A stretch of DNA of 64,000 nucleotides from Adineta vaga (lineage: Eukaryota > Animalia > Rotifera): contig CP075493.1 of NCBI GenBank assembly GCA_021613535.1, positions 6,014,001-6,078,000 on the forward strand. The letters are read 5' to 3'. Made by a program: the position numbers and the translations under genes. How positions within the stretch are numbered: position 1 is the stretch's first letter; each line of letters starts with the position of its first letter. Below are positions 28,854 through 54,200 of the stretch, piece after piece. Below the pieces are notes generated by a model. That model was not told the origin of the DNA, did no database searches, and was given only the letters and a program-made list of their open reading frames with translations.

Positions 28854-30642
28854 CAACATCTCCATATCATCTTATTGGTAATGAAGATTTTCCTGGTTCA
28901 AAATATGATCATACGAAACAGTAACTCATATGATCTTTTCCAATCATGTACATTTTGATGTTTATTATAACAATACTTTTCGTTACATGTCCACATATGA
29001 AATACTATTACAATACAAAAGCACAATCCTTTTCAGAAACTATCGTTTGAAAGAATATTTTTGATAGTTGTTTTTCTCATGACGTAAATAAAGGTACTCT
29101 TTCATACTAACAATCAACGAATATTCTCGATTTTTTAGTTTTATTTGAGAGAAAAAAATGCATTTAAATAAGAATTTAATAGCATAACATCTTTGATTAT
29201 AAGTGTCAAATCATTAATTCGATGGATTTTGTTTACAATGCGATATCTATAATGAATAACACAAAGATGTAATCTCGTACCTTCAAATCACTAAAAAAAA
29301 CGATGCACAATGTAAATGCGATGAAAGTATTAAATCATCAATATACGTCAAAATAAGATATGACTGAAAATGCAAAGCACAAGGACGTTCGTATCCTTTT
29401 TTTTCGATACGTCTGATTGATACACATCACGATTATCATTGACTAACACGGACTACGGCCTTCGAAATAATAGCCTTGTATACAAGATTCTTCTTTTTTT
29501 CTTCTTATATACATTTGCTTCTTTTCATGAACACGGAAGTATGATTGAGTCTAGTGGACAATCACCATACTGGTTTTAGTGAAAATTTAGAGAGAAAAAA
29601 CGATGAATGTTGTATGCAAAGATAACGAAGGTAGATTAAACGACCATCTTCCTTTTCCGCACGAATAATTTTTTGCTTTTATCTTCGCATATGTTATAAA
29701 CATTAAAAAAGGAAGTACGAAATATCTTAATATAATAGACAAGCCATTAAGTTGGGAGAGTGAAAGAATCATTTAATTTTTGCGCATCTTCATCACACGA
29801 GAAAAAAAACACATTATACATAAACTTTATTTGTACTAATGATAGACGACGAATGAAAGTAAACAAACAAAATAATGTTCTCATCAATGTTATACTGAAT
29901 CTTATTTCACTTGAACTTTAGTTCCGTTGATCGATATATGATGTCAAGATAATTCCGAGTCATTTAATACTTAACCAACGATCAGATTCATATAGCTACA
30001 AATAAGGAGTATCTGTTTGTTTAGTCTATTGTTTCGATTGTGTTATCGATGCAGCAAAAAAGAAAACAAAAGCGAACTTGGAATAAATCATCTTAGAAAA
30101 TACTGTCATTTAAATATTGCATAAACAGATTATATTAGTTTAAATTTATTTAAGCGAATAATATCATTGAAAGATATTGTGTATGTGTTGAAATCGATAG
30201 CAATATAATAGTTTTCACTAACTAAATGCTACCTATTTACATAAACAAAATTAGGCGTCAAAGACATTTTTCATTTTCAAATGCATTCGTTTTTTTTATC
30301 TCGCTTTTTCTTTGATAGCTAACGTCAATCTTTCATACTCTGATGGTTTTTGCGAAATTTTCTCTGAGCAAACCTGCCTAATAGGATAGAATATATGAGT
30401 AATGATCCAGATCAATCAAGAGAAAAAAATGTACAAACCATAGAGAGACTAGCGAAAAAGTGACGTTAGCCAATAATATTGATTTATTCAAGGCTACTAC
30501 CTAAAAACAAAAGAGAAAAGATTATGGACATCGTCGAAAAAAAAAGATGGGGAAAAAAAGTATATAAACTGGTGGTTTTCATACATGATCACACATTCGT
30601 TTTCATTTTTCCTTTGAATATCACCTCGTCGAAAACACAAAG

Positions 30643-31588
30643 ATGTACGCTCCTCCACCAGCTGCTGCTCCCGGTGGTGCTGCCAGGTTAGTGAACGAAT
30701 CTTCACATTTCAGCACTTTCATATCTTGCAATCTTTATGTTGAATAGAACCGGATTGGCTGCCAGTGGTCCAATTTTGGCTATCTGCTGTCTCTTATTTA
30801 TCCTGTTCTTGATCGCATCAACAATCGTTCTTGCATTAATTCCTGTGTATCTTTCAACACGCGATAGCACTGCGAGTAAGAATATCGTTTATGATAAAAT
30901 CTACTCAACTTTGATGCATTGTACTGTTTTTATTTAGCTGGTAAAAGTCCAAGTTATCTTCTTGATCTAGACCAAACCGATTCTACTACTAATAAAAAAC
31001 GCGCTACCATCACAAGCTTCGATGAAGGTCAAGAGTTAGATTCAGATTCACGTACAAATACCGCCAATGCAGTAAATATATTTGAACATACAAATACATA
31101 ATCAAGAGTTTTATTAAAAATACATATTTTTTTATAGGTAATATCTAAATTGGGTTTGTCAAGTGGCGCATTTCTTGTGGATCAGTGTATAACTAAATAT
31201 ATTACTTCACGTAAACGACGAGGATTGTAAGTGTTACAAAAAATATTAACGGATTAAATGTATTACTTGTTCTAAAATTACTAGCGGTCTCTTACGAGAA
31301 GCACGTGCTAGTAGTCCAAAACTCTTTTGCAAAGTTCGTTTCAATTTGGCAAGATGTGGAAGATGTGGTGCTACGTCATTTCTCCAAAGCATTTCAACTT
31401 TCGTCATCACAGTTTCACAAACTCTTCTAGTTAGCGGGTCCCCTGTATCACGAAGAATAACGTATTTGTGTAAACTTACTCTTTCAAGTAGGTTTTATGT
31501 TTCATATGTACAGTACAAAACTTTTGCTCTTTTAGTTGCTGGCTACCCATCATCTTCCAGTACAGCCACTGGAAAAGTCCTTGGTTAA
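30643..31588 (+). CDS. Unrecognised type II membrane protein, family copy 1 (6 exons)
   Basis: MYAPPPAAAPGGAAR-TGLAASGP-TM (ILAICCLLFILFLIASTIVLALIPVYL)-module with KKR, SRKRRGF, LFCKVRFNLARCGRC and YLCKL, ending ...TGKVLG*. All introns are GT-AG and in phase. TATA box upstream. Confidence 0.85.
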
Positions 31589-33965
31589 ATGGCCGAAAAA
31601 AATAATTCAAAGACATCTATTTTTATTCTTCTCCACTATTTTTCATACTAATCTTCTCTATGCTAATTCACAACTAAAACACATCCATTTCATTCTGAGA
31701 TTCCTCATCATATTTATCTCTCGATTGAACATTTCGTGGAATAAATACAGTTTTCTTTCTTACTCTGGTGAATGAAAACTTCCACATTCGGTTATTTTGT
31801 CTCTGATCATACAAAAACTAACGAAAAATATGTCTCATCTTTTTTTCCATCCTTTTTCTCATCAATAAAGTATTCATTTTACCTCTTACAGTTGGCTAAA
31901 AATCATTTTCATTGATTCGCATGAATAGTTTTCTCATTATGAAAAGTTTAATATCACATCCTGTGTTTTCTTCGTCTAAATTATCTTATGATTGACGCGA
32001 TGTACCTTGATGTAGACATTTCATTAATGAATAAAATCATGCTTTTAATATCTATGAAGAAAAACACAAGACTTAATTTCGTACATCGTATAGTGTACCT
32101 AAGTACTCTTATCACTATTGATTATCATTTGATTATATGCCCCTCATGATATTTCGTACTCTTACTCTTTTGAAAATATTTCCATCTGAATGGATATTTA
32201 CGAGAAGGCCCACGAGCTCATCGACCACATGAGACACTCGTGAAAGAAGTTTTCTAAATTTTACATTCTCATTCGATTCAGTATCGTTTCGAATCTCAAA
32301 TCTAACTCCCTACCCCGTTTTGTCCAATTGCTGAAAAGTATGATCCATTTTACTATTGAACATTCTCCAAGATATGGAAATAATACAAGTCAAAATTCTC
32401 TTTAAATCTACAGTTTTTTCTACTTACAAGAAGTTAACGATAGATTCTTGCGTCAAATACCAAACGAAACAGTGTGGAAAGCTAAAACATAGATAGTTAT
32501 TTATATATTACTTTGGAATGAAATAATTCAGAACCGTCGAGGATTGCACATTTTGTATGCAGAATAATATCTCCTATCTCTAGCATATTGATCGTCATTA
32601 ATAACTCTTCTTGGATCCCAACGTTGCATTTCAGATATTTTATACAACTTTGTCTCTTCTAAGAAACGGTACAAAAGAGGTGGAAAAGAAATTTGCGCTT
32701 GATATCTAACTTGGTTCACATTTTCGTGGTATTAGATCGATTTTTACGATTTTTGATAAGAATCAAATATTTTGTGCTCATTTTAATGATTACGATATTC
32801 GAAATCAGTGTCAGCCTTTGTAGCCACTCATGATGCAAATAGAGGATCGACATTGTCTCACTGAAAAACTCAAAAATGCCCTTCTATTCATTGCAATACT
32901 TTTGAATTATATCCAATTTTTGTTTATGAATAGCAAGAGAGAAGAATATAACATATGTGTTCGATTCATTAGTGAGTAGTGACTTTAAATCTTTACAAAA
33001 CTAAAATAAGGTGAAAATACAACAAAAACTGCATATCACTATCATTATTAATCCACTTTAACCATTTCTGACTAAACTTCATATCTTAAGATATGGACCA
33101 ACACGTTTATATCAAAATAATTCAAGGGAATTCGAACGACAGTAATATCTTGAACATTATAAATGAGCAAGAGAAATTTGTCTCTCATTTTGTCTTCATT
33201 GAGGATTAATATTTATTTTGATGGCAGATTCGTCACTTTAGGTTTAATCAGGCAATGAAGAGCACATAAAATAGTTTTGACTAGGGATCACCGATACTAT
33301 AATTCGCAGTGAAAAACCAAAAGTTAGATTAAAATATATCCTGATGCAGAATAAGTGATACAGAAAAATTGTTACTAGTCTCTGTTGGTTTACTCGAAGC
33401 TATGATTATGGGACTATAGTTCAAAGTATTTTCCTACTTAAAATCGTCGATCTGTGACAAAAAATCAGTTCTCTGGTGTACAGAACGACTATGAAGCAAG
33501 TGAATGATTTCGAGCAATAAATAAGATATCGATCAATAGGCAATTCATAGAAACCAGTAAGAACCTGAAATCGGACATCTCATCTATTTAAATAACAAAA
33601 TAGTATACTTCTGGAATAAATTTCAATTATTTAGTTGAATTATCTGTCATTTCTCTAGAATGTAAAGTAAATATATGTGCATCATACTCTGATGTTATTT
33701 CGGAATTTTCTTTCAGTAGACTTGCCTAATATGATAGAATATATGAGTAATAATTCTGATCAATCAAAAGAAAAAGGTATCAACGATAGACAGACTAATG
33801 AAAAAATGATGGTAGTCAAGAATGTTAATTTCTTCAAGGTTATCAGCTAAAATCACGAGAAAAATAAGGTGAGAGAAAACGGTATATAAACTGGTGATTT
33901 TCATACATGATCATACATTCGTTTTCATTTTTTCCTTTGAATATCACCTCGTCAAAACTACAAGG

Positions 33966-35551
33966 ATGTACGCTCCTCCACCAGCTGCTGCTCCCGGCGG
34001 TGCTGCCAGGTTAGTGAACGAATCTTTTTAGATTAGTGCTTTCATATGTTGCAATTTTTATGTTGAATAGAAGTGGCTTGGCTGCCAGTGGTCCAATTTT
34101 GGCTATCTGCTGTCTCTTATTTATCCTGTTCTTGATCGCATCAACAATCGTTCTGGCATTAATTCCTGTTTATCTCTCAACACGTGATAGCACTTCAAGT
34201 AAGCATTTCATTTATGACAACATCTATTCAATTCTGATTCACTGTACTGTTTTTATGTAGGTTCTAAAAGCTCACCTTATACTCTCACAGGAACACCTGG
34301 CAGCATTATAGGTGAAGATCGCAAGCGCACGTCTTACAGCGCCCTGACTGAAGGCAGTTTGGATTCAAGCGTACCGACAGCAATCGCTAACGCAGTAAAT
34401 ATTCAAATATATAAAGACGAAGTCAAAATTTTTATTTAAAATCTATATAATTTTCTAGATGATATCGGCATTGAGTCTGCAAAGCGGTTCAGTCCTTGTA
34501 GACACTTGTTTAATTTCATCATCGAGTTCGCGTAAACGACGAGGATTGTAAATACTCAGAATTGTAATCAAAACCAGAATGTATTAAGTTTTTAATAATT
34601 TTTAGTGGTCTCCTACGAGAATATCGTGATACCATTCCGAAACTCATTTGTTTATTTCGCTTTGAGAAGACGAAATGTACGAAGTGTGGTGCTTCATCAT
34701 ATCTCAATAGCATTAAAAGCTTCACTATGACAGCTTCACATAAGGCTACACCTATTGGTAAATCCGCATCTATACAATTAATAATCCTGTATAGCTGTGT
34801 ACTCTCAACAAGCACTAGCACTGCGAGTAAGAATGTTGTTTATGAGAAAATCTATTGAATTGTGATGTATTGTACTATTTTTATTTAGCTGGTGAAAGTC
34901 CAAGTTATCTTCTCACTGCAGACCCTACCGCCATTACAGATACTAGTGGTAAGCGCGCTGACTACCAAAGCTTCGATGCAGATCAAGAGTTAGATTCAGA
35001 TTCACGTACAAATACCGCCAATGCAGTAAATATATTTGAATATATAATCACATAATCAAGATTTTTCTTAAAAATTCATATTCTTTTATAGGTAATATCT
35101 ACATTGGGTTTGTCAAGTGGTGCCTTTCTTGTAGATCAGTGTAGAACTGCATATACTACTTCACGTAAACGACGAGGATTGTAAGTATTGAAAAGTATAT
35201 TCACGAATTAAATGTATGACTTGTTCTAAAATTTCTAGCGACATCTTACGAGAAGCTCGTGCTACTAATGGTGTAAAACTCTTTTGCAAAGTTCGTTTCG
35301 ATTATGCGAAATGCGGAAGATGCAGTTCTACGTCGTATCTCCAAAGCATTTCAAATTTCGCCATCACAGCTACACAAAGTATTAAAATTTCTGGTGAATC
35401 ATCAGTTCCAAAGCGAATATTCACATATTCGTGTAAACTCACTCTCTCAGGTAAGTTTTATGTTTGATATGTACAGTACAAAACTTTCGCTCTTTTAGAT
35501 GCTGGGTATCCAACATCTACTAGCGGATTCACTGGAGCAGTGTCTGGTTAA
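33966..35551 (+). CDS. Unrecognised type II membrane protein, family copy 2, with two tandem extracellular modules
   Basis: Same leader and TM exons. A divergent module (about 34261-34826) splices in phase to a second module (about 34889-35551) that ends GFTGAVSG*. Confidence 0.82.
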
Positions 35552-36704
35552 ATGCCCGAAAAAATAATTCAAAGACATCTATTTTTATTCTTCTCCACTA
35601 TTTTTCATACTAATCTTCTCTATGCTAATTCACAACTAAAACACATCCATTTCATTCTGAGATTCCTCATCATATTTATCTCTCGATTGAACATTTCGTG
35701 AATAACGGAAAAATATATCCCATCTTTTTTCTTCATTCTTTTTCTCATCAATAAATTATTCGTTTTACCTCTTGCATTTGGATAAATATCATTTTCATTG
35801 ATTTGCATGAATAGGTTTCTCATTATGAAAGGTTTAATATCACATCCTGTGTTTTCTTCGTCTAAATTATCTTATGATTGACGCGATGCACCTTGATTTA
35901 GACATTTGAATGATAAATAAAATCATGCTTTCAATATCTATGAAGAAAAACACAAGACTTAATTTCGTACATCGTAGTTGTCATGTGATTATATAACTGT
36001 ATAATATTTCATACACTTATTCTTAAAAAGATAGTTTCTATCTCTATGAATATTTCAAAGAAGGACCAAGAGCCCATCGACCATACTAGACACTCATGAG
36101 ATAAGTTTTCTAAATTTTACATTCTCCTTAGATTCAGTATCATTTCGAATCTCAAATCTATATTCCTACCCCATCTGGTCCACTGCTGTAAAGTTTGATC
36201 AATTTTACTATTGAACATTCTCCAAGATATGGAAATAATACAAGTCAAAATTCTTTTTAAATCTACAGTTTTTTCTACTTACAAGAAGTTAACGATAGAT
36301 TCTTGTGTCAAATACCAAACGGAACAGATAGATAGTTATTTATATATTACCTTTGAATGGAATAATTCGGAATTATCTATTCACAACCATCGTAGAGTGC
36401 TCATTTTTTTATGCAAGGTAATATCTCCTATCTCTAGCATATTGGTCGTCATTAATATATTTTCCCGGATCCCCAAGTTGAATTTCAAATATGCTGTATA
36501 ACTTCTTCTCTTCTAAGAAACGATACAAAAGAGGTGGAAAAGAAGTTTCCGCTTAAGATCAAAGCACAGCTCAGATCGCTTGGGTATTTGATAGCTTTTT
36601 ACGATTTTTGATAAATACCAAATATTTTTACTGACTCTCATGATCATGATACTCGAAATCAGCGTCAGCCTTCGTAGCGACTCATCATCAAAACATAACA
36701 CCTA

Positions 36705-37433
36705 CACTAGAGTGCAAAAACCATTGCCCTCTATACGTACTTTTTTTTGACAAGAGATCTTGAGAAATGTTTTGAAGTTTTTCTTGAAAAAGATATCAAA
36801 AATGATTTTAGACCAATATCTGTTTGCACAACATCAAAATAGTCGGAAGCAGCATCAGTTACAGAGAATGCTATCATGACGATATTCTATTTCGTGAGAA
36901 AACAGAGTAGAAGTTTCAATTACATTTTCATATAATCATTCAAAACTATCTCTTCAATTTGAGTTTCAAGACGACAATCTTGACTCGAATTTCACAAAAA
37001 TGCCTCTATTTCACTGAAATCGTCAAACGACAACAGAGTTTCTAGCTTTAACTAAGTTTACTCGCCGAAAAAATGGACGACATCATCAAATTGATATTAA
37101 GTGAACTTAAAGTTAATACATCAGAAATCATCTAATCTATAATAAAACATCCCACTTAAGAAAAAAATGATCAAAACTTCATCATTTGAACAGTTTTCCT
37201 CGTGCAATATTTGAGAAAACTAAATAAGTTAGTCTAAATAATTTTATCCAGTCGATAGCAATCAGATATTTCTGTCATAGACAATTCAAAGAAACACCGA
37301 ATCAGATAATTGTTTTGCTAATTTTGTAGTTCGTCCTATGCCTTATCTATCAGTATGTGTGATGATTATAATTAGCATACACATTCAAAGATATACATAA
37401 AATACTAAGGGCTAACACTTTTGCACCTGACTG
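36705..37433. mobile_element. Degenerate non-autonomous Tc1/mariner-like element
   Basis: Absent from the homologous spacer after copy 1 (about 32840-32860) and flanked by TA on both sides. Imperfect TIRs: CACTAGAGTGCAAAAACCATTGCCCT versus reverse complement CAGTCAGGTGCAAAAGTGTTAGCCCT. No intact ORF. Confidence 0.65.
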
Positions 37434-38951
37434 TATATAGAACGACAGTTTATCACTGAAAAACTCAAAAATTGCACTTCTATACAATGCAGTACTTTTG
37501 AATTATATGTACTTTTCGTTTATGATTAACAAGAGAGAACAAAATAAAGTGTCTGTTCAATCCATTAATGAGTGTTGACTTCATACCTCAACGAAACCAA
37601 TATACGATAAAAATATAACAAAAACTGTAAACCACTATTGTTATTAATTCGCTTTAACCATTTTGGACTTAGTTCCATCTCTCCGGATTTAGATCAACAC
37701 CTTCATAGATAAATAATCGAATGAAATCTGAACTACAGTAAGATCTTGAAGACCAAAGCGAGAATGAATGTTTATTTCCGAAGTGTAGAATCTGGCCTTC
37801 TGTGCCAACGTACTGGAAGAAAGTTTTCCTCTTAGAATTATGTTTTAAAAAGAATGATTAGCTCTAAAGAAGTTTTTCTATGCGGAGAAGTAGAAAGAGA
37901 TTTTTGTTTTGTATTATGGATTGAATTCGTAATAGCTTTATCCTTTCCTTAAGTTTTATGAGAAACGTATTCCTTAAAAAAGGCATATTCGTTTATGATA
38001 ATAGCAAGAGAAATTTGTCTATTATTTTGTCTTCATTGAGGATTAATATTTATTTTGATGGCAGATTCGTCATTTTAGGTTTAATCAGGCAATGAAGAGC
38101 ACATAAAATAGTTTTGACTAGGGATCACCGATACTATAATTCGCAGTGAAAAACCAAAAGTTAGATAAAAATATATGCTGATGCAGAATAAGTGATACAG
38201 AAAAATTGTTACTAGTGTTTGTTTGTTCACACAAAGCTAAGATTATGGAACTGTAGTTTAAAGTGTTTTTCTACTTAAAATGTGTCGATCTGCAAGAAAA
38301 ATTCACTTCTCTATATACAGGACGACCATGAAGCTGGTGAATGATTTCTATCATGTTTATCATTCAAAGCGATATCTTTCACGAACCTCCTAACCTTCTT
38401 CAAAATTATTATTTGAAATGAGTATGGGATATGCGTCCACAGTTTTCGATTTCATACAAACTAAATAACTGATTTAGAGCAGTATATGAGATATCGAGTA
38501 AAGGGCAATTGGTAGAAACTGGTAATAGCATCAGATCTGACACCTCATCAGTTTAAGTAATAAAATGTTATACATCTGGAATAAATTTCAAATTTAGTTC
38601 ACATATCTGACACTTCTTTAGAATGTAAAATAAATAAAAGTGCATCTTACTCTAATGGCTTTGGCAAAATTTTCGCTTGACGGACTTACCTAATATGATA
38701 CAATATATGAGTAATAATTTTGATCAATAAAGAGAAAAAGTACAAACGATAGAGAGATTAGAGAAAAAATGACATTAGCCAATAATGTTAATTTCTTCAA
38801 GGTTATCAGCTAAAATCAAGAGAAAAAGTCATGAATATCGTCGAAAAAAATAAGGTAGGAGCATACGGTATATAAACTGGTGATTTTCATACATGATTAT
38901 ACATTCGTTTTCATTTTTTCCTTTGAATATCCCCTCGTCAAAACTATAAGG

Positions 38952-39904
38952 ATGTACGCTCCTCCACCAGCTGTTGCTCCCGGCGGTGCTGCCAGGTTAG
39001 TGAACGAATCTTCAGATTTCAGCACTTTCATATCTTGCAATTTTTCTGCTGAATAGAACCGGTTTAGCTGCCAGTGGCCCAATTTTAGCTATCTGCTGTC
39101 TCTTATTTATCCTGTTCTTGATCGCATCAACAATCGTTCTTGCATTAATTCCTGTGTATCTCTCAACACGCGATAGCACTGCGAGTAAGAATATCGTTTA
39201 TGACAACATCTATTCAATTGTGATGCATTGTACTACTTTTATTTAGCTGGTAAAAGTCCAAGCTATCTTCTCACTGCAGACCCTACCGGCTTTCCAGACA
39301 ATAATGGTAAACGTGCCACCGCCTACGAAAGCTTCGATGCAGATCATGATTTAAATTCAGAATCATGTACAAATACCGCTAATGCAGTAAATATATTTGA
39401 ATATAAAAATACACAATCAAGATTTTTCTTAAAAATACATATTTTTTTTATAGGTAACATCTAAACTGAGTTTGTCAAGTGGTGCTTTTCTTGTAGATCA
39501 GTGTAGAACTGCATCTAGTGCACGTAAGCGACGAGGATTGTAAGTATTGAAAAGTATATTCACGAATTAAATGTATGACTTATTTTAATATTTCTAGTGG
39601 TCTCTTACGAGAAGCACGTACCAATAATGGTGTAAAACTTTTTTGCAAAGTTCGTTTCAACTATGCAAAATGTGGAAGATGTAGTGCTACGTCATTTCTC
39701 CAAAGCATTTCAACTTTCATCATCACAGTTTTACAAACTCTTCAAATTCGTGGGGACTCTGTAACACTAAGAGTAACGTATTCGTGTAAACTAACTCTCT
39801 CAGGTAAGTTCTATATATGATATGTACAATACATAACTTTTGCTCTTTTAGATGCTGGTTATCCTACATCTACTAGTGGGATCACTGGAAAAGTCCTTGG
39901 TTAA
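38952..39904 (+). CDS. Unrecognised type II membrane protein, family copy 3
   Basis: Same 6-exon structure. GKR, ARKRRGF, LFCKVRFNYAKCGRC and YSCKL, ending TGKVLG*. Confidence 0.85.
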
Positions 39905-40803
39905 ACGCCCGAAAAAAGCAACTCAGAGACATTTATTTTCATTCTTCCACAATATTTCTCATACTAATCTTCTCTATACTAATCCGCAACCAAAACAAAT
40001 CCATTTCACTCTGAAATTATTCATCACATTTATCTTTCGATTGAATATTTCGTGGAATAAATATGGTTTTTTTCTTTTTCTTGCCAATGAAAACTTTTAT
40101 CCATTCTTTTTCGCTTCAATAAATCATTCGTTTTATGTCGTATAGTGGGCTAAATATCATTTTCATTGATTTGCATGAATAATTTTATGATTATGACACA
40201 TTTTATATCACGTCTTTTGTTTTCTTTGTCTTCATACTATTATAGTTAACGCATTATACACATTGATTTAGACGTTTGAGTGATTAATAAAAACATGACT
40301 TAATTTCGTTTTTCGTATAGAGTATCTAAGTATTCTTGTCACTATTGATTGTCATTTGATTATATGCTCCTATAATATTTCGTGCACTTATTCTTATAAA
40401 GATATTTTCAATCTCAATGAATATTTGAGAGAGGCCCCATCGACCATAGGAGACACTCGTGAAAAGAGTTTTTTAAATTTTACATTCTCATTAGATTCAG
40501 TATCATTTGAAAGCCCAAATTCAAATTCCTACTAGATTTGGTCCAATTGCTGAAGAGTTCGATCAATTTTACTCTTCAACATTCTCCACGATATGTAAAT
40601 AATGCAACTGAAAATTTTCTTCAAATGTTTTAGCTTCTGCTATTTGCAAGAAGTTAACGATACTTTCTTGTTTCATGTGCCGAACAAAGTAGTGTGGAAA
40701 GCTAGAACAAAGATAGTTATTTATATTCGAATAGAATAATTCAGAATTATTTATTCACAACCATTGAGGATTGCGTATTTTTTATGTGATATAACCTATG
40801 TCT

Positions 40804-41210
40804 AGAAAATCTTCGTAAAGAATGCGCTAGCTAAAATAAAGATTTTTTTGCACTTTTCAGGACTTCGAATGTGATAGATTCACATCGTTTACAACAGTAT
40901 GTAGGAAACAAGATAGATATGGTATTTTGTAGAGCAAGCTTCCTTCTACAAACTGGCATATAAAACTACCATCTTGAATTTAAATTAAGAAAATTATAAT
41001 CAGAATTCAAACTAATAGGCTTTGTAAAAATGTAATTTTTGTCTTCATCAAAGATTCGTGTCTTATTACTTCATTTCAATAGAGCAAAAACTTCTGAACA
41101 CATATTCAGAAAAAGTATCACATTCTGCTTCTAACTCACTTTTTTTTCATTCTCTTCAGTTACGTCTAAATGAAAGAAAACTACTAGCACATTCTGTACG
41201 AAGACTTTCT
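40804..41210. mobile_element. MITE-like insertion with 27-bp terminal inverted repeats
   Basis: AGAAAATCTTCGTAAAGAATGCGCTAG versus reverse complement AGAAAGTCTTCGTACAGAATGTGCTAG (3 mismatches). It interrupts the CCTATCTCTAGCATA site that is intact at about 32573 and 36427. Confidence 0.8.
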
Positions 41211-42193
41211 CTAGCATATTAGTCGTCGTTTTTGTATTTTCTCGGATCCCCACATTGAATTTCAGATATGTTGTACAACTTCTTCTCTTCTAAGAAACGA
41301 TACAAAAGAGTGTTGGAAAATAAGTTTCCGCTTGATATCTAACTTGGTTCACATTGTTATGGTATTTGATGGATTTTTACGATTTCTGATAAAAGCCAAA
41401 TATTTCTACTGACTTTCATGATCATGATATCCGAAGTTTCGAATCTCATTTTTTGTATTATTGATTGAATGCGTTCTAGCTTTATTCCTTCGTTAAGTTT
41501 TTTGAAAAACTGGTTCGTTAAAAAGCGCACATTTGTTTTAATCTGATGATGAAGAGCATATAACAATTTTTTTACAAGTTATTGTCAACACTATAATTCG
41601 CATTGAAAAACCAACAGTTAGACCCAAATATATGTTGATGTAGTTCAAAGTATTTTTCTGATTAAAATGTGTCGATCTGTGAGAAAAAATCAGTTCTCTG
41701 ATATACAGGACGACTATGAAGCCGGTGAATGATTTCAAGCAATAGGCAATTCATAGAAACCAGTAAGAATCTGAAATCTGACATCTCATCTGTTTAAGTA
41801 ACAAAATAGTATACTTCTGGAATAAATTTCAATTATTTAGTTGAATTATCTTTCATTTCTCTAGAATGTAAAGTAAATATATGTGCAACATACTCTGATG
41901 TTATTTCGGAATTTTCTTTCAGTAGGCTTGCCTAATATGATAGAATATATGAGTAATGATTCTGATCAATCAAAAGAAAAAATATAAACGATAGAGAGAC
42001 TAATGAAAAAATGATGGTAGTCAAGAACGGTAATTTCTTCAAGGTTATCAGCTAAAATCAAGAGAAAAAATCATGGACATCGCCGAGAAAAATAAGGTGA
42101 GAGAAAACGGTATATAAACTGGTGATTTTCATACATGATCATACATTCGTTTTCACTTTTTCCTTTGAATATTACCTCGTCGAAACTACAAGG

Positions 42194-43151
42194 ATGTACG
42201 CTCCTCCACCAGCTGTTGCTCCCGGTGGTGCTGGCAGGTTAGTGAACGAATCTTCACATTTCAGTACTTTCATATGTTGCAATCTTTATGTTGAATAGAA
42301 GTGGCTTGGCTGCCAGTGGTCCAATTTTGGCTATCTGCTGTCTCTTATTTATCCTGTTCTTGATTGCATCAACAATCGTTCTTGCATTAATTCCTGTGTA
42401 TCTTTCAACACGCGATATCACTGCGAGTAAGAACAACGTTTATGAGAAAATCTATTGAATTGTGATGTATTGTACTATTTTCATTTAGCTGGTAAAAGTC
42501 CAAGTTATCTTCTCACTGCAGACCCTACCGCCATTACAGATACTAGTGGTAAGCGCGCTGACTACTCAAGCTTCGATGCAGATCAAGAGTTAGATTCAGA
42601 TTCACGTACAAATACCGCCAATGCAGTAAATATATTTGAATATATAATCACATAATCAAGATTTTTCTTAAAAATTCATATTCTTTTATAGGTAATATCT
42701 AAATTGAGTTTGTCAAGTGGTGCATTTCTTGTAGATCAGTGTAGAACTGCATATACTACTTCACGTAAACGACGAGGATTGTAAGTATTGAAAAGTATAT
42801 TGGGAGATACAATGTATGACTTGTTCTAAAATTTCTAGTGGCATCTTACGAGAAGCTCGTGCTACTAATGGTGTAAAACTCTTTTGCAAAGTTCGTTTCA
42901 ATTATGCAAAATGTGGAAGATGTGTTTCTACGTCGTATCTCCAAAGCATTTCAACTTTCTTCTTCACAGCTACACAAAGTATTAAAATTTCTGGTGAATC
43001 ATCAGTTCCAAAGCGAATATTCACATATTCGTGTAAACTCACTCTCTCAGGTAAGTTTTATGTTTAATATGTACAGTACAAAACTTTCGCTCTTTTAGAT
43101 GCTGGGTATCCAACATCTACTAGCGGATTCACTGGAGCAGTGTCTGGTTAA
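42194..43151 (+). CDS. Unrecognised type II membrane protein, family copy 4
   Basis: Same 6-exon structure. The module is nearly identical to module 2 of copy 2 and ends GFTGAVSG*. Confidence 0.85.
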
Positions 43152-44554
43152 ATGCCCGAAAAAACAATTCAAAGACATCTATTTTTATTCTTCTCCACTA
43201 TTTTTCATACTAATCTTCTCTATGCTAATTCACAACTAAAACACATCCATTTCATACTGAAATTCCTCATCATATTTATCTCTCGATTGAACATTTCGTG
43301 AATAACGGAAAAATATATCCCATCTTTTTTCTTCATTCTTTTTCTCATCAATAAATTATTCATTTTACCTCTTGCATTTGGATAAATATAATTTTCATTG
43401 ATTTGCATGAATAAGTTTCTCATTATGAAAGGTTTAATGTCACGTCCTGTGTTTTCTTGGTCTATATTCTATTATGATTGACGCGATGCACCTTAATTTA
43501 GACATTTGAATGATGAATAAAACCATGCTTTCAATATCTATGAAGAAAAACACAAGACTTAATTTCGTTTTTCATATAGTGTATTTAGGTGTTCTTATCA
43601 GTATCAATTATCATTTGGTTGTATGTTTATTCAATATTTCTTATACTGAACCTCAGGGACATTCTCCATTCGATTGAATAAATAATGAGAAAGAGTAGAT
43701 AGAAATAAGAAAACAATATTGTCTGAATTATAATGCAAATTCAATGTGTCAAAGATGTGTATCAAATTCTTTTGCAATTTGACTATTTTTTATGATAGAA
43801 AATAACCATATTAAGTCATTTCGACCAGAAATAAAGTTTTAATAGGAGAAATTTAGTGTGCTAGAGTAGATTCAGCAAAATAGATGTTTTGTATTCTTTT
43901 GTCGAAAAATTAATCCATTTGAAAACAAAATATAGGTTTTTCTTTGTATATCTTCTGATCGTGAATATGTTACTAAAGAAGAATGTATTTCAATATACGT
44001 TTGATTTCTAAAGCTTTTATTTGTACTGACAATCTATCGTCAGAATACCGTGATAATTTATCAGTTACATTCTATTGCGTTTTTCTCTCTCATTTTTCTA
44101 ATGAGTATGAAGATAGAAGAACGCATGAAATCATTAATAACGAGGTGTAGAAGCAATTAATATACGTATTTCATGCGAAAATAAAAAATTTCATTGATAA
44201 ATGCAAGAAAAACACATTCAAACCGTGTCAAATACATTCAGCATTCAAGGTTGAATATTCAACTGACGAAACTACATGTTCATCAGTGTATCTATGTACA
44301 TTATATAGAAATTGTAATTTTTGGAATAGAATACAAAAAGTTATTTAAGATTAACCTCTTTCATTTACTGCTTTCTGTTAGGTTGTCATCAACTTACTGA
44401 TAAAATCTATCAAAAGAAAGGTGATAAAAGAAAAAATTGTTTACAAAAAAATACAATGAGAAAGAAAGCATACATTTATATCACGTTTACACATAAAAGA
44501 ATAAAAAGTAGAAAGAGATTGTGAGGGCAAAAATAATAATAAAAAAAAATACAT

Positions 44555-48286: not shown

Positions 48287-51200
48287 TTAACGAAATGTCC
48301 ATAATGGATCTAATTGATTGAAGGGATCAGATAAATCTTTCATTGGTGATGGTTTTGTTCGAAAGAAATCATCTCGTGTTGTTTTTGGTTTTATATGACT
48401 TTCCTCTGGACGTAAATTAAAATTTGCTTCAATAGATGTTAATTGTTTCGCTGGTGGTTTTTCTTCGATAATTGTTGAAGTTGGAGTTGATGACAGAATT
48501 GGACCAACATCATAATTTGGTGTAGATTGAACTATTGGTTTAGATTTTTCCATGATAGTTTGCATTTCTTCAGTAAGTAGAACAGTATTTGTATTTGGAG
48601 AAGTAGATCTTAGATTTGAAGACATTGATTGTTCGTGAAGTATCGAAGTGACATTTAACGTTCCACCTGGAAAATGATTTAATTTAAAAAAAATTGGATA
48701 TTAAAAAAATCAAATCTTACGTTTAACGAGACGTTCTTGTGTATAACGAAGAAGAGCTTCATAGACGAACTTTAGTTGATTCATGTCTTGTATCATATTT
48801 CGACGTTTTGTACGAAGTAAACGTATAATTTTGTTTAAATCAGGAAATGATCGACCTTCATCAATATCTTGAATGCTCGTAAACAAAGCTAAAAATGGAC
48901 CTGTACGAGAGACACCACTCCTAAAAATTGAAATAGATGGGTGATTCTAAAGTATGAAGTGATGAGACTTACATGCACGTAACTAATATTGTACTTCGTG
49001 GATTTCGTGTTTGAGTAAGAAAATGTTGTACTTCTTGAATAAATTTCAATAATTCAGTTGAATTATCTGGCATGTCTCTAGAATGTGTAAAGTAAATAGT
49101 CTTGCATTCTATTGCAGAAAACAAAATAATACTTCGGTGGCCAACCAAAATGTTCAAGCCAAACGACAGTTCTTGATTGATTTATCTTTAGTATTAAAAA
49201 AAGAAGAAATTGATACAGAATGATTAGTGAAGTTAAATGAAACATACTTGTGAATGATGTATACGTATTATTCTATGATTAGTCAGTGAATTAGGACTTT
49301 TTGTACTAAGTAAAGTGATAGTAAAAGATGAAATTTGTAGTTCTTCTCCCACTTTTTCTGGGTAAACATTCTAAATATCAAATCGTTAGAATTATACTGA
49401 CGAATCTAAACAATCTTCTTACTATTGATTGTATTTCATCAGGTCTTAGAAGAACAGCAACAATGGCAACATGTTGATCATAAATCATTGACCAAAAATC
49501 ACCAATAGTTGTAGGTAATGGATATTGAGCAGTGATAAATGAAGCATCACGAATTTTCTACAATGGTAAATAGGAATATTACATTGAAATAAATGAAGCT
49601 TCTATTGTTTCATTGCTTACTCCAATTGATGTTGCATTTATATAATCATTGAAATGTTTTTGTTGATTGGAATTCGATTGAACCAGACGAATACGTGAAT
49701 TATCATCTATACAATATTCTGGTATTATTCATACAATTAATAAATAAAACTTACAAGGAATTAAGTCTTGAAATCGATTGAGTTTTGGATTACATTTTCC
49801 AATTGCACAGGTTTGAGTATGTACATCTTTTTCTTGTAAATCAGATAGTTCCTAAGAAAGAAAAAAAAACACTTTTTGGTTATTCAAATATTAAAATAAG
49901 AGAATTTAATCTTACTTTCCATTCCACTTCAAGTGGTACTGTACCATTTAAAATCTTTTTGGTCATTGTACTAACATGTTTTTCAAAGCGTTGACTATCA
50001 GCGACCAATTGATCAAGTTTATCTTTATCGTCATGTGAATCTTGTGATTGTGATGAACTTAGAGTAGGCATTGGTGTTACAGGTGATTGTATTGATTGTT
50101 TCTCTTCTGTAACTATTGGTAATGGTTGAATGCAAGCGATGGGTTTACCATGACTTTTCATGTGTAATTCATCATCGATTGGACTGAGTGGTTCAGGTTC
50201 AGATGAAATTGGTTCTGTATTAGAAATCGATAGTGTTGTTTCTAATTGTTGCTCAAGAGCTAATGATAATAGATCATCATCAATTTTAGGTACTGATGGT
50301 TGATTTGATACTGAATTCGCAGATGTTTTACTAGTTGTTGGTGAAGGAACAAGTGGAAGCGATGGGACAGGGGCAGCAGGTGATGGAATAAGAGGAGTTA
50401 CAGGTGGCGGTAGAGGAGGGGTCGGTGTAGAAACATATTGCACGAATTGGTTTGGATTATAATTGTTATTACTATTGTTATTGTTATTAATTGTTGATGT
50501 AGGCATTTGTGGTGTGTTTGTTGAAAGTAAACCACCAGGCTGATAAACATCTTGCGGTTGAAGACGAGCCGTAGGTGGTACTATGTTTTGTTGCTGTTGA
50601 GATGATGGAGTAGTCGGTGGCACAAAGGATGGATTTTGTGATTTAGGAATATCATAAGCTCCTACAGGTTGTGGACGGTAAGGGTCAAACTTTGTCGGTG
50701 GCTGAGCAGAACGATTGGGATCATTTAAATTTTGATACATAGTTGGCTGTTGTATCTGATAATGATTTGTTTGTTGAAGAAATGGTGGTTGTGCTGGCTG
50801 TTGAAGCGAAGAAGATTGGTGAAATTGTTGCTGTGACGATGATGGTTGATATGTTGGTTGTTGAGTTGGATGTGATTGATAGAATTGTTGCTGTGGAGGT
50901 AACGGCTGAGGAAACATTTGTTGAGATGATGATGGTACTTGATGAGAAATCTGTTGAGTTGAAAGTGTTTGGTGGAACATCTGCTGATTTGGAGGTGCTT
51001 GATGAATTAATTGTTGAGGTGGTAGAGGTTGATGAAAGGCTTGCTGCTGCTGCGGTGGTAGTGGTGGCGGCGGAGAGGGTTGATAAAATGTTTGTTGAGG
51101 TACAACACTAGGCTGATGAGTAGCAGTTCGTGAATTGTAGAATTGTTGTTGATAAGTTACTTGCGGCTGAGTACCAAAATTCTGTGTAAGGAAAGCTGGA

Positions 51201-54200
51201 TTGGAATCTATGGAATGTGATTGATTATATTTTGGTTGGTGATATGATAATGATTGCGTTGGTAAAGGTGGTGCATACGGCAATGATGGTTTTTCGAAAT
51301 GTGTGGGTGATTCAACTTGATAATGATGAGGATGAAATGCAGGCAATGATGTAAGTGTCGATCCAGATGGATATGAAGGAGTTGATGTTGGCATTATATT
51401 AGCCGAGAAATTGCCACCATCACCCATATTTGATACAGGTGGTGGTATGTATAAATTTTCATCACGATTAGTAGAGGATCGTTTTGACGAACGACCTGTA
51501 GTTGAGCCCCAAGTATCAGGTTTCATAGCAGCCAAATAATCTTTCAATCTTGGTCGATCAGGTGTTGTTGATGGTAGACTTGCTGTTGGAAATTGAGGTT
51601 CAGGAACATCTTGACCCTGCCAAGTAGGTAATGGACTTTGGCGTGATGGTCTTGATGATGGTAATTGACGATGTAATGAAGATCTTGATGGTATAGTCGG
51701 TATTGTTGGTGATTGATGTTGAGATTGTAATGTTGCAAGACGTTCATTTAATTTGATTAGTTTTGCACTTTGCTATTGTGGAAAAAAACAAGAAGAAATA
51801 AAATATAGATTCCGAATGAAAAATACCTTTTTATAAAATTCAATGCCTTCATGTGCTTTTGACAGAATATCTTCGAATGATTTAAATGAATTGATATAAT
51901 CTTGAATTAATCGACTACGTCTATCATAAGGGAAAATCATAAGGGAAATAGTGAATTTTATATTTATATTTGATAAACAACAACAATATTTTCGTATACT
52001 TACGTCTCAAATGTTGTTCCAATTTTTGTTCGTACATCGGCAATTTCTGCATTAGCTTCTGTTAATGATTGTAATATATTATCTTGTGCTACACAATTTT
52101 GTTTTATAATATTAATAAGTTCTTCATGTTTCTTCACTTGATCAGTAAATAAATTCTATAAAAAAAAAGTATATACTATAGATTATTTATAAATAGTTTC
52201 AAAATCATTTTACTTTATGATTCTCTTGTCTTTGCATAAGTACCAATTTAGTGATGTCATCATCATGAATCTTTTTACGAAAATCAGTTAATAATGTCTC
52301 ACGTTGATTCTTCATCGTTTCGATCTTTTCATTTAAGAAGACTAAACGAGCTAATTTTGATTTATTTGCTTCATCTGAATTCGAAGAAAAAAACAAGATC
52401 ATTAGTAAAATAACAATGAAAAACGAAATATAATCTTTTACCATCAAGTTCCGTTATAATTGGTAGCTTTTTTTCCAATTGATCCATTGGTAATTGAAGA
52501 ATTTTTAAATGATCAAGAATTGTTGTCATATGTCGATGTAATCCAATGTTACTTTCATTGGCCTGTACCATCATATCACGAATAGTTTTAATATTTAATT
52601 GTAAATCTTTAAATTCTTTATCAGATTTTATAGAACCATTTTTTTCTTCAAGATTATTCAATGCTTGTTCAAAATCGTCAAGTTGACCAGTGACATCATG
52701 ATGTTGACTATTCAACTCTGAAATTAAAAAATAAATTATTCACCTATAAATCTGTAGATGAAAAGCCGTAGTCTCTTCTTTGATTTAGACATTTTTGTCT
52801 TTGAAAAAACTATCGAAACATACGTTGCATAGCTGTAACAAGATCTTTTGACATATTTGGACGAGCAGCAACAGCAGCACAACATTCAAGTAATTCTCGT
52901 GGTAAACGAAGATATTCATTATTCATTGGAATACGATCCAATTGTAAACAAAGCATAAATGTACTATAAATAGAAAGAATATTTGAAAATATCAATACTC
53001 AATTTTATTTTCATACTCAAGTTCTCGATTTTTATTTTCTGTTAATTCAATAATTTCACGTAAGAGTTTCGCTTTTTCTTCACTATATTCCGATGCAGCC
53101 AAATGTGCATCCTAAAAACAGGAAAATATGTGTAAAATTATTTGAATAAAAAAAAACTATCCTTACCAATGGAACCAATTTTTGAAAAATATCCGCTCCG
53201 CATACTTCAGCATCATGACAATCAAATGGTTGTGATTTCGCAACAATTGCTCCTATAGATAAAAATCAGCAAATTCTTTTCATCTTATCCTATCAAGACA
53301 TACCTTGAACAGCTGGTAGACTTGATAATGCTGGTACTTTCTCAAAATATACACTATCATTATCACGTTTAGCTACTTTATATCTATTCAAAAAAAAAGA
53401 TTTTATTTAATTTGTAAATAATAAGTCATTTCTTTACGTACTTTCCCATGACAACATCATAAGTAAATGTATGTGCATCTTTAAATATATTCGCTTTGTC
53501 TGAAGAAATTTTCTCCGCATTTTTCCAAGCTTCTTTTAATCGTTCAACACCTGCTTCATAGTAACAAACACTTTGACCATATTTTTTATTTTCTTCAGCA
53601 ACTAAACCAGAAAAATAATATGCAATTGCCAAGTAATACGACAATTTGTATGTTAAAGCTACACGCCATTCCTAGAAAAGATAAAACAAATGTCGTCTTT
53701 GAACATATATATATAAATCAATAATGAATCAAAGATTTCTATGTGAATGTTTAGAAGACTTCTAATTTTGCGACTTTGATTGGTTCACATTGTATGAAAA
53801 TAGAAACGATGTGAATCCAGTACTAGTAATCGCATTATATGTGAGACAAAATATGAATTATGAGTTATGTGAGGAGCATCTGTTTATAAGATTCGAACTA
53901 TGTCACTTTGGACTGATGAATAAATCAATTACCATTCAACTGTAATTCACTTTCAAGTTAATTCTATCACTGGACAAATGTGAAAACTTACACGATATCG
54001 TTTTGATATAATTGAATTAATTCCTGGTTTTGTTAGATTCAAAAGTGCCATTTGATAATATTCCGATATTTGCATAGCAATATGAGCGTTCACTGAAGGT
54101 GCTCGTTGATCAAGTAAAGACTTTTCCAGTACGGATTCATGTGCTTGTGCCTATACATAATCATCAGTATTCATTATCGAACGAACGAATGAACGAAATT

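Follow-up and report, generated by a model that had tools for sequence, protein, structure and literature searches.

A tandem array of orphan genes in the rotifer Adineta vaga may encode small membrane proteins with a divergent, furin-cut SEA-like module

Introduction

Contig C1 of the six-contig, 100.8-Mb Adineta vaga assembly carries a tandem array of four genes whose products are called "hypothetical" in every database, and the locus raises the question of what these proteins are. The analyzed stretch of DNA (the window; C1:6014001-6078000, 64,000 nucleotides [nt]) is AT-rich, with a guanine plus cytosine (G+C) content of ~30%. An initial annotation, based on the sequence, had read the array as type II membrane proteins processed by proprotein convertases and assignable to no known family. 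Our best explanation, to which we give an even chance of being right, is that the genes encode type II "mini-mucins" whose divergent SEA-like stalk is cleaved by a furin-type convertase, a lineage-restricted variant that is an orphan at the sequence level. Judging from the structural model, the outer part of these proteins probably shares its fold and its cleavage position with the SEA stalks of mucins and Notch. We infer the topology, the cleavage, the continued association of the two halves, and a role as surface coat or sensor.

Results

Four intact genes carry five ectodomain modules

The leader pattern ATG-TAY-GCN-CCN-CCN-CCN-GC occurs four times in the window (30643, 33966, 38952, and 42194) and in none of 100 shuffles, and repeat analysis found four units of ~3.3-5.0 kb, each with one leader copy. 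Direct reading of the DNA gave four intact tandem genes, which together hold five ectodomain modules:

30643-31588, + strand: gene 1 (I4U23_001922, P0001), 216 amino acids (aa), 6 exons, from DNA reading and the public protein
30643-30686, 30748-30875, 30938-31071, 31138-31226, 31285-31487, and 31536-31588, + strand: exons of gene 1
33966-35551, + strand: gene 2 (I4U23_001923, P0018), 368 aa, 9 exons, two modules
34261-34394, 34459-34547, and 34606-34826, + strand: exons of module 2a in gene 2
34889-35025, 35092-35180, and 35239-35450, + strand: exons of module 2b in gene 2
38952-39904, + strand: gene 3 (I4U23_001924, P0020), 218 aa, 6 exons
42194-43151, + strand: gene 4 (I4U23_001925, P0021), 220 aa, 6 exons, from DNA reading and the public protein
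42194-42237, 42299-42426, 42489-42625, 42692-42780, 42839-43050, and 43099-43151, + strand: exons of gene 4
42299-42426, + strand: signal-anchor exon 2 of gene 4 (transmembrane helix, CC, IVLALIPVYL motif)
30748-30875, 34071-34198, and 39057-39184, + strand: equivalent exon 2 in genes 1, 2, and 3
31210-31221, + strand: RKRR codons at the end of exon 4 in gene 1, from the per-exon translation
34531-34542 (module 2a), 35164-35175 (module 2b), 39523-39534 (gene 3), and 42764-42775 (gene 4), + strand: equivalent RKRR codons
31586-31588, 35549-35551, 39902-39904, and 43149-43151, + strand: stop codons

All introns are GT-AG and short (48-66 nt), with identical phases (2,1,0,2,1). The exon models coincide with the four public A. 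vaga records, each named "hypothetical protein": all the exon translations were found in order in these proteins, with one split codon per expected junction, and the database records were used as the full-length proteins. The protein encoded by exon 2 is 95-100% identical among the four genes. The exon 4/5 junction falls within the Phe codon of GF, which puts the second basic site (RE[A/Y]R) at the start of exon 5.

The four genes and five modules that the initial annotation had placed at 30643-43151 were recovered with exact boundaries, 43151 being the last position of the gene 4 stop codon. The motifs listed there were all present in the per-exon translations: the MYAPPPA[A/V]APGGA leader, the transmembrane segment with CC, the KR in 5/5 modules (GKR in three), the RKRR followed by GF[G/D][L/I]LRE[A/Y]R in 5/5, and the cysteines of D[Q/T]C, L[F/I]C, CxxC, and Y[S/L]C. 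As a side observation, intron 5 of gene 1 (31488-31535) has 48 nt and contains no in-frame stop; if retained, it would add 16 residues and leave the frame intact.

The family is centered on Adineta

Pfam and NCBIfam were scanned exon by exon and then, on the database proteins, in full length; neither collection returned a family match in either form. A lone 16-bit match of the exon scan to ribosomal L37e was taken as chance. The profile search against PDB sequences returned only bL32 and snurportin, with expectation values (E) > 0.3. A word search with the longest stop-free stretch (112 aa, 31250-31585) gave no match, under a length rule that excluded the 216-aa proteins. Thus, the statement that the proteins belong to no assignable known family holds at the sequence level.

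Relatives were found with family alignments. The aligned exon-5 sequences of seven modules, used in an exhaustive profile search, gave 17 matches among 1.84 billion proteins, and a word search with the full-length family alignment gave 47 proteins. The named relatives all belong to A. vaga, A. steineri, or A. ricciae and are labeled "hypothetical" or "unnamed"; environmental JGI and Logan contigs of 0.9-1.3 kb account for about 25 more. Neither Rotaria nor any other named taxon was present among the 47 proteins. In the A. vaga genome, the copies are the four genes of the array and one diverged tandem pair:

C2:1077750-1081240, minus strand: tandem pair of family genes, one member being I4U23_006001 (P0002, 214 aa)

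The genes of this pair have six exons and intron phases identical to those of the array genes. They retain the leader, the anchor, a KRKRR site, and FC..C..C, but the KR site and two cysteines are absent. No flanking gene was common to the C1 array and the C2 pair (64 kb and 50 kb compared). These results supply the copy count and the taxonomic range that had been proposed as checks, and they describe an orphan family that, in the sequences available, is limited to Adineta and environmental transcripts.

The predicted ectodomain has a SEA-like fold

The product of gene 1 (P0001) was modeled with AlphaFold2 together with 34 relatives. The mean predicted local distance difference test (pLDDT) was 77.7 and the predicted template modeling score 0.62, with ectodomain blocks at pLDDT 87-94. 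The predicted topology is a membrane helix, beta-alpha-beta, a disordered loop, and beta-alpha-beta-beta, with the following elements in P0001:

Residues 19-53: transmembrane helix
Residues 64-70: beta1
Residues 73-81: disordered loop with KKR
Residues 93-107: alpha1
Residues 114-122: beta2
Residues 123-143: low-pLDDT loop with RKRR (127-130) and REAR (136-139)
Residues 144-152: beta3
Residues 162-167: alpha2
Residues 170-181: beta4
Residues 184-197: beta5, an extra strand

The model therefore contains the ferredoxin-like beta-alpha-beta-beta-alpha-beta order of the SEA and SEA-like fold, and its R-x-[KR]-R motif (RKRR, 127-130) is predicted to lie in an exposed loop between beta2 (114-122) and beta3 (144-152). 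Solved SEA or SEA-like domains were among the structural matches (MUC16, Gpr126, IA-2, dystroglycan, TMPRSS6, and HAT); RAMP and RRM domains were also among the top ones. When the ectodomain was searched by language-model (ESM) features, the three best named clusters were all PF01390 SEA, with scores of 0.80-0.82, which we treat only as a lead. The strand-helix-strand-(RKRR loop)-strand-helix-strand pattern and the SEA/ferredoxin-like fold of the initial annotation agree, at the level of prediction, with the AlphaFold2 elements, the SEA structures, and the SEA clusters. Its further ideas of a disulfide that bridges the cut, of shedding, and of a function in recognition or defense are hypotheses.

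Two other candidates were dropped: BRICHOS had no PF04089 match, either per exon or in full length, and the top 50 structural matches contained no BRICHOS chain; no match supported reading R/GFG as a viral fusion-peptide-like sequence.

Conservation converges on the basic loop

Conservation was evaluated on an alignment of 34 single-module members, in gene 1 numbering. The invariant positions are L30, I37, A38, L43-P47, Y49, R127, and C159, and at least 90% conserved are M1, Y2, R15, the CC pair, R129, R136, R139, F151, C156, and the terminal Gly. The N-terminal part thus consists of an MY start followed by prolines, an Arg ahead of the helix, and a helix of ~30 residues with CC and IVLALIPVYL, while in the ectodomain conservation is limited to the polybasic site, one Phe, and CxxC. 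The polybasic site [KR]R[KR]RR is followed by GFGL-x-R-x-x-R in 33/34 members, and most members have two R-x-[KR]-R motifs with a spacing of exactly 9 residues. The basic loop is the best-conserved element of the ectodomain, though it is predicted to be disordered. The G/S[VI]VV autoproteolysis motif is absent from all the modules, and the loop holds the polybasic sequence instead. The KR site and the cysteines of D[QT]C and Y[SL]C are confined to the array clade and are not family-wide. The tail is Ser/Thr-rich, with (GSSGT)n in relatives, and a Gly stands directly before the stop in 38/42 family proteins. The named Adineta members end in T-[GA]-x-[VLI]-x-G, for which C-terminal amidation, with the terminal Gly as a putative substrate of peptidylglycine monooxygenase, is one idea.

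On our best explanation, each protein would have a 17-residue cytoplasmic leader (MYAPPP...R), a long signal-anchor helix with CC, and an outside portion (N-in, C-out) formed by one or two juxtamembrane SEA-like modules of ~140 residues and a short Ser/Thr-rich tail ending in Gly. The module would fold in the endoplasmic reticulum, and a furin-type proprotein convertase of the late secretory pathway would then cut the disordered beta2-beta3 loop after RKRR. A second cut, after the R-x-x-R nine residues on, would in most members remove the conserved nonapeptide GFG[LI]xRx[RAE]R. The halves would be held together by their shared beta-sheet, as in MUC1, Notch, and GPR126. The outcome would be a surface "mini-mucin" of two chains, the outer of which could be shed or pulled off. 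The anchor would stay unchanged, and the ectodomain would drift or diversify across tandem arrays. Proprotein-convertase P-domains are encoded at several loci of the genome, which also encodes Cu2-monooxygenase (PHM/DBH-type) domains; the presence of both is necessary, not specific, evidence for processing.

The same sites could belong to a membrane-tethered precursor, from which the two or three basic sites release the nonapeptide and/or a C-terminal chain of ~80 residues with its terminal Gly amidated, the SEA-like fold acting as a scaffold. The exact 9-residue spacing of the tandem motifs, an inter-site peptide conserved beyond the need of a spacer, the 38 terminal glycines, the Cu2-monooxygenase domains, and the clade-specific KR in what is predicted to be a second disordered loop (residues 73-81) all fit such a precursor. 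We consider it unlikely: the sites lie within one compact predicted domain whose halves should not fold on their own, SEA domains known to be cut by furin remain in one piece (PMC6954182), and no Gly precedes the basic sites, so that the nonapeptide itself would not be amidated. A bdelloid-specific form of the idea, in which the double cut excises the nonapeptide and frees an amidated, beta-rich chain of ~80 residues as a diffusible signal or coat unit, with the array supplying variants, has in our judgment a slim chance.

It is likewise improbable that the protein stays uncleaved at the surface and uses the polybasic loop to bind sulfated glycans, acidic lipids, or a partner protein. In favor of this, the Arg/Lys content of the loop (up to RRRRR plus RxRR) is far above what furin needs, and conservation reaches past the minimal motif into GFGL; however, convertases classically cut just such a motif, R-x-[KR]-R with a Gly after it in a disordered luminal loop, the position is that of the SEA cleavage loop, and convertases are present in the genome.

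Weak points of the SEA-like reading and the orientation of the protein

Several results weigh against a cleaved, SEA-like ectodomain. Pfam gave no match for 34 full-length members at E up to 1, including none to SEA PF01390. The AlphaFold2 model rests on 34 related sequences, and that of the two-module gene 2 product, built with 8 sequences, was poor (pLDDT 48.7), its only usable part being a secondary-structure pattern that occurs twice. Foldseek on an AlphaFold model had been proposed together with the initial annotation; with the whole model, it returned only noise, the RNA polymerase matches probably coming from the long helix. A shape search of the ESM Atlas was uninformative (best template modeling score 0.41 by query and 0.50 by match). 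In some two-module relatives, the first module has no basic site. No transcript record was found for the four exact array proteins, in a search that may omit records of the window's own genome. Finally, the topology signal is weak, with a net charge of the helix flanks of +1.95 on the N side and +1.33 on the C side, and N-glycosylation sequons are rare (0.48 per protein).

The last two points, together with the RAMP and RRM domains among the top structural matches and a weak basic-plus-CxxC likeness to ribosomal zinc ribbons, would suit the opposite topology (N-out, C-in), in which a cytosolic RRM-/RAMP-like domain carries a basic stretch for nucleic-acid binding or nuclear localization. This seems to us highly improbable. 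Arg is commoner in the N flank, which is nearly devoid of acidic residues; the tails are rich in Ser and Thr, as in mucins, with (GSSGT)n in relatives; and the language-model matches are clusters of extracellular SEA domains. A zinc ribbon had no supporting match and was dropped; the lone CxxC makes it impossible. From the weak positive-inside bias and the Ser/Thr-rich tails, the ectodomain would lie outside the cell, with the module starting ~10 residues past the sole hydrophobic helix.

The anchor is constrained and the ectodomain weakly so

The ratio of nonsynonymous to synonymous substitution rates (dN/dS) was computed by exon and was 0.08 for the anchor exon (E2), 0.86 for E3, 0.62 for E4, 0.56 for E5, and 0.51 for E6. 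The divergence (K) was 0.16-0.21 in the ectodomain exons versus 0.12-0.145 in the introns. The anchor is under strong purifying constraint, while the ectodomain is weakly constrained, a result compatible with diversification that gives no proof of positive selection. The contrast between a constant anchor and a variable ectodomain, already remarked in the initial annotation, is thus visible in the rates (0.08 versus about 0.5-0.9).

Evidence of expression comes from close relatives. The JGI contig L028 (930 nt) has an uninterrupted frame of 651 nt that encodes a homologue with 53% identity; its 5' and 3' untranslated region motifs are near-identical to those of the window, and its exon junctions are exactly at the modeled intron sites. 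The Logan contig L029 (SRR17873661) is also intronless; the two contigs are 0.93-0.94 kb long and their homologues 50-53% identical. Because both are intronless, close relatives are expressed and, as far as these sequences tell, spliced as modeled.

These data also bear on whether the genes are fast-evolving, lineage-specific sequences of little or no function, the array being a near-neutral recent duplication and the fold an over-reading. An ectodomain dN/dS of about 0.5-1.0, ectodomain exons that diverge at least as much as introns, and the missing transcript records of the four exact proteins (with the limit of that search) are what such genes would show. We regard this as very unlikely, in view of the open frames, splice sites, cysteines, and basic loop retained in 5/5 modules, of the purifying selection on the anchor, and of the same motifs found at 31-53% identity across three Adineta species and many environmental transcripts.

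Gene 2 resembles an in-frame join of two neighbors

The array units are 75-99% identical in a mosaic pattern that includes promoters, introns, and spacers, which suggests unequal crossing-over or gene conversion. Module 2b of gene 2 is near-identical to gene 4 (synonymous divergence, dS, 0.04), and module 2a is the oldest module (dS about 0.7-0.8). Two features describe the duplication and the putative fusion:

30400-43630, no strand assigned: whole duplicated array of four units, including promoters, introns, and spacers, from repeat comparison; the homology of unit 4 stops near 43630
34802-34826, + strand: fusion junction of gene 2, read directly from the DNA, the fusion itself being deduced

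The final 25 nt of gene 2 exon 5a match the final 25 nt of an exon 2 at 21/25 positions, and the intron that follows exon 5a is an intron 2. Because of this, gene 2 appears to be an in-frame join of two neighboring genes at a CTYTCA microhomology. The join would have lost exon 6, the spacer, exon 1, and most of the transmembrane exon.

Similar anchors occur elsewhere in the genome

About 30 other loci of the genome have an exon matching the anchor helix of the family (E 1e-12 to 1e-3). They include the following, with about 25 more:

C3:12910505-12910627: anchor-like locus
C3:15310564: anchor-like locus
C4:6975146: anchor-like locus
C6:9431913: anchor-like locus
C5:1565758: anchor-like locus
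C1:2362803: anchor-like locus

In six anchor-like loci inspected by eye, the helix is followed by exons with a polybasic site (RRKR, TRTKR, KKKKR) and C..C, and then by large exons; one locus gave a weak G8-domain match (E 0.0018, below the cut-off). The hidden Markov model of the family matches only the transmembrane exon at these loci, and an hhalign comparison of the C3 exon with the family ectodomain was not significant (E 0.18). A word search with just the anchor returned only the same family.

A six-frame search of the genome with PF01390 (E up to 0.001) gave no match, but the search works exon by exon and its controls were also without match, so it is no proof of absence. The result is only a hint that the A. 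vaga genome has few classical SEA domains or that they have diverged. Because of the missing PF01390 matches and the ~30 other loci with the same anchor helix, the rotifer might use the anchor cassette as a general replacement of the canonical SEA stalk.

Two further open frames of the window were recorded:

502-1566, + strand: single 354-aa open frame with an N-terminal membrane helix, a Ser/Thr-rich stalk, and a trypsin-like serine protease (IINGN..., ...GDSGGP); by eye, it resembles a type II transmembrane serine protease without a recognizable SEA
49880-51547, - strand: 555-aa open frame of extreme Gln and Pro richness, within the sole stretch of raised G+C in the window (0.38), with a strong GC skew of +0.44

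Discussion

How does the rotifer family compare with known SEA proteins? The SEA domains of MUC1 (by autoproteolysis), Notch2, and human GPR126 (both by furin) are cut in the beta2-beta3 loop, and the cut chains remain together until force parts them (PMC6954182). Processing of Notch at S1 gives a non-covalent heterodimer (PMC2726630), and KIAA1549 is cut by furin in a membrane-proximal SEA-like domain (PMC13570299).

Like the type II serine proteases (matriptase/TMPRSS6, HAT/TMPRSS11D, and enteropeptidase), the rotifer proteins have an N-terminal anchor and then a module that we read as SEA-like. This module of ~110-140 residues, predicted to be ferredoxin-like, adjoins a single membrane span, as in these proteases and in MUC1 and MUC16. 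The putative processing site in the beta2-beta3 loop and the attached Ser/Thr-rich, mucin-like sequence also recall the SEA stalks of proteases and mucins. Unlike those, the family has no PF01390 match, a polybasic convertase motif in place of G/S[VI]VV, a predicted extra fifth strand, and a conserved CxxC; neither a protease nor a long mucin domain follows, and the module makes up nearly the whole ectodomain.

A convertase motif in what is predicted to be a SEA-like beta2-beta3 loop is shared with the Notch heterodimerization domain (S1), human GPR126/ADGRG6, KIAA1549, and IA-2. By analogy with Notch, GPR126, and KIAA1549, the expected product would be a non-covalent two-chain protein separable by force. 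However, these four are large type I or seven-transmembrane receptors with many further domains and a single furin site, whereas the rotifer proteins are small, predicted to be type II, and have two sites nine residues apart. The second R-x-x-R past RKRR, the conserved peptide after the putative cut, and the C-terminal Gly are features of the family that we do not see in known SEA proteins. Furthermore, furin-cut SEA-like proteins are widespread in animals, whereas this family is found only in Adineta and in environmental transcripts.

A likeness also links the family to BRICHOS type II proproteins (ITM2B/Bri2 and proSP-C), which are small type II membrane proteins with a luminal beta-alpha domain, conserved cysteines, and furin-type processing that frees a C-terminal piece. 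The Bri2 furin site stands after the domain, whereas the putative rotifer site is inside it.

A predicted fold and a testable processing hypothesis can now be offered for a family listed as "hypothetical" in every database, and the double site, the nonapeptide, and the terminal Gly give proteomics specific targets. If the SEA-like reading is true, the family would add a very small, type II, sequence-unrecognizable member to the cleaved SEA-like stalks of mucins, Notch, and adhesion G protein-coupled receptors, and the "cut but stay together" design would have arisen, or persisted, in a minimal form. More speculatively, a fast-evolving array of surface proteins in a bdelloid could bear on coat renewal, desiccation, or contact with parasites.

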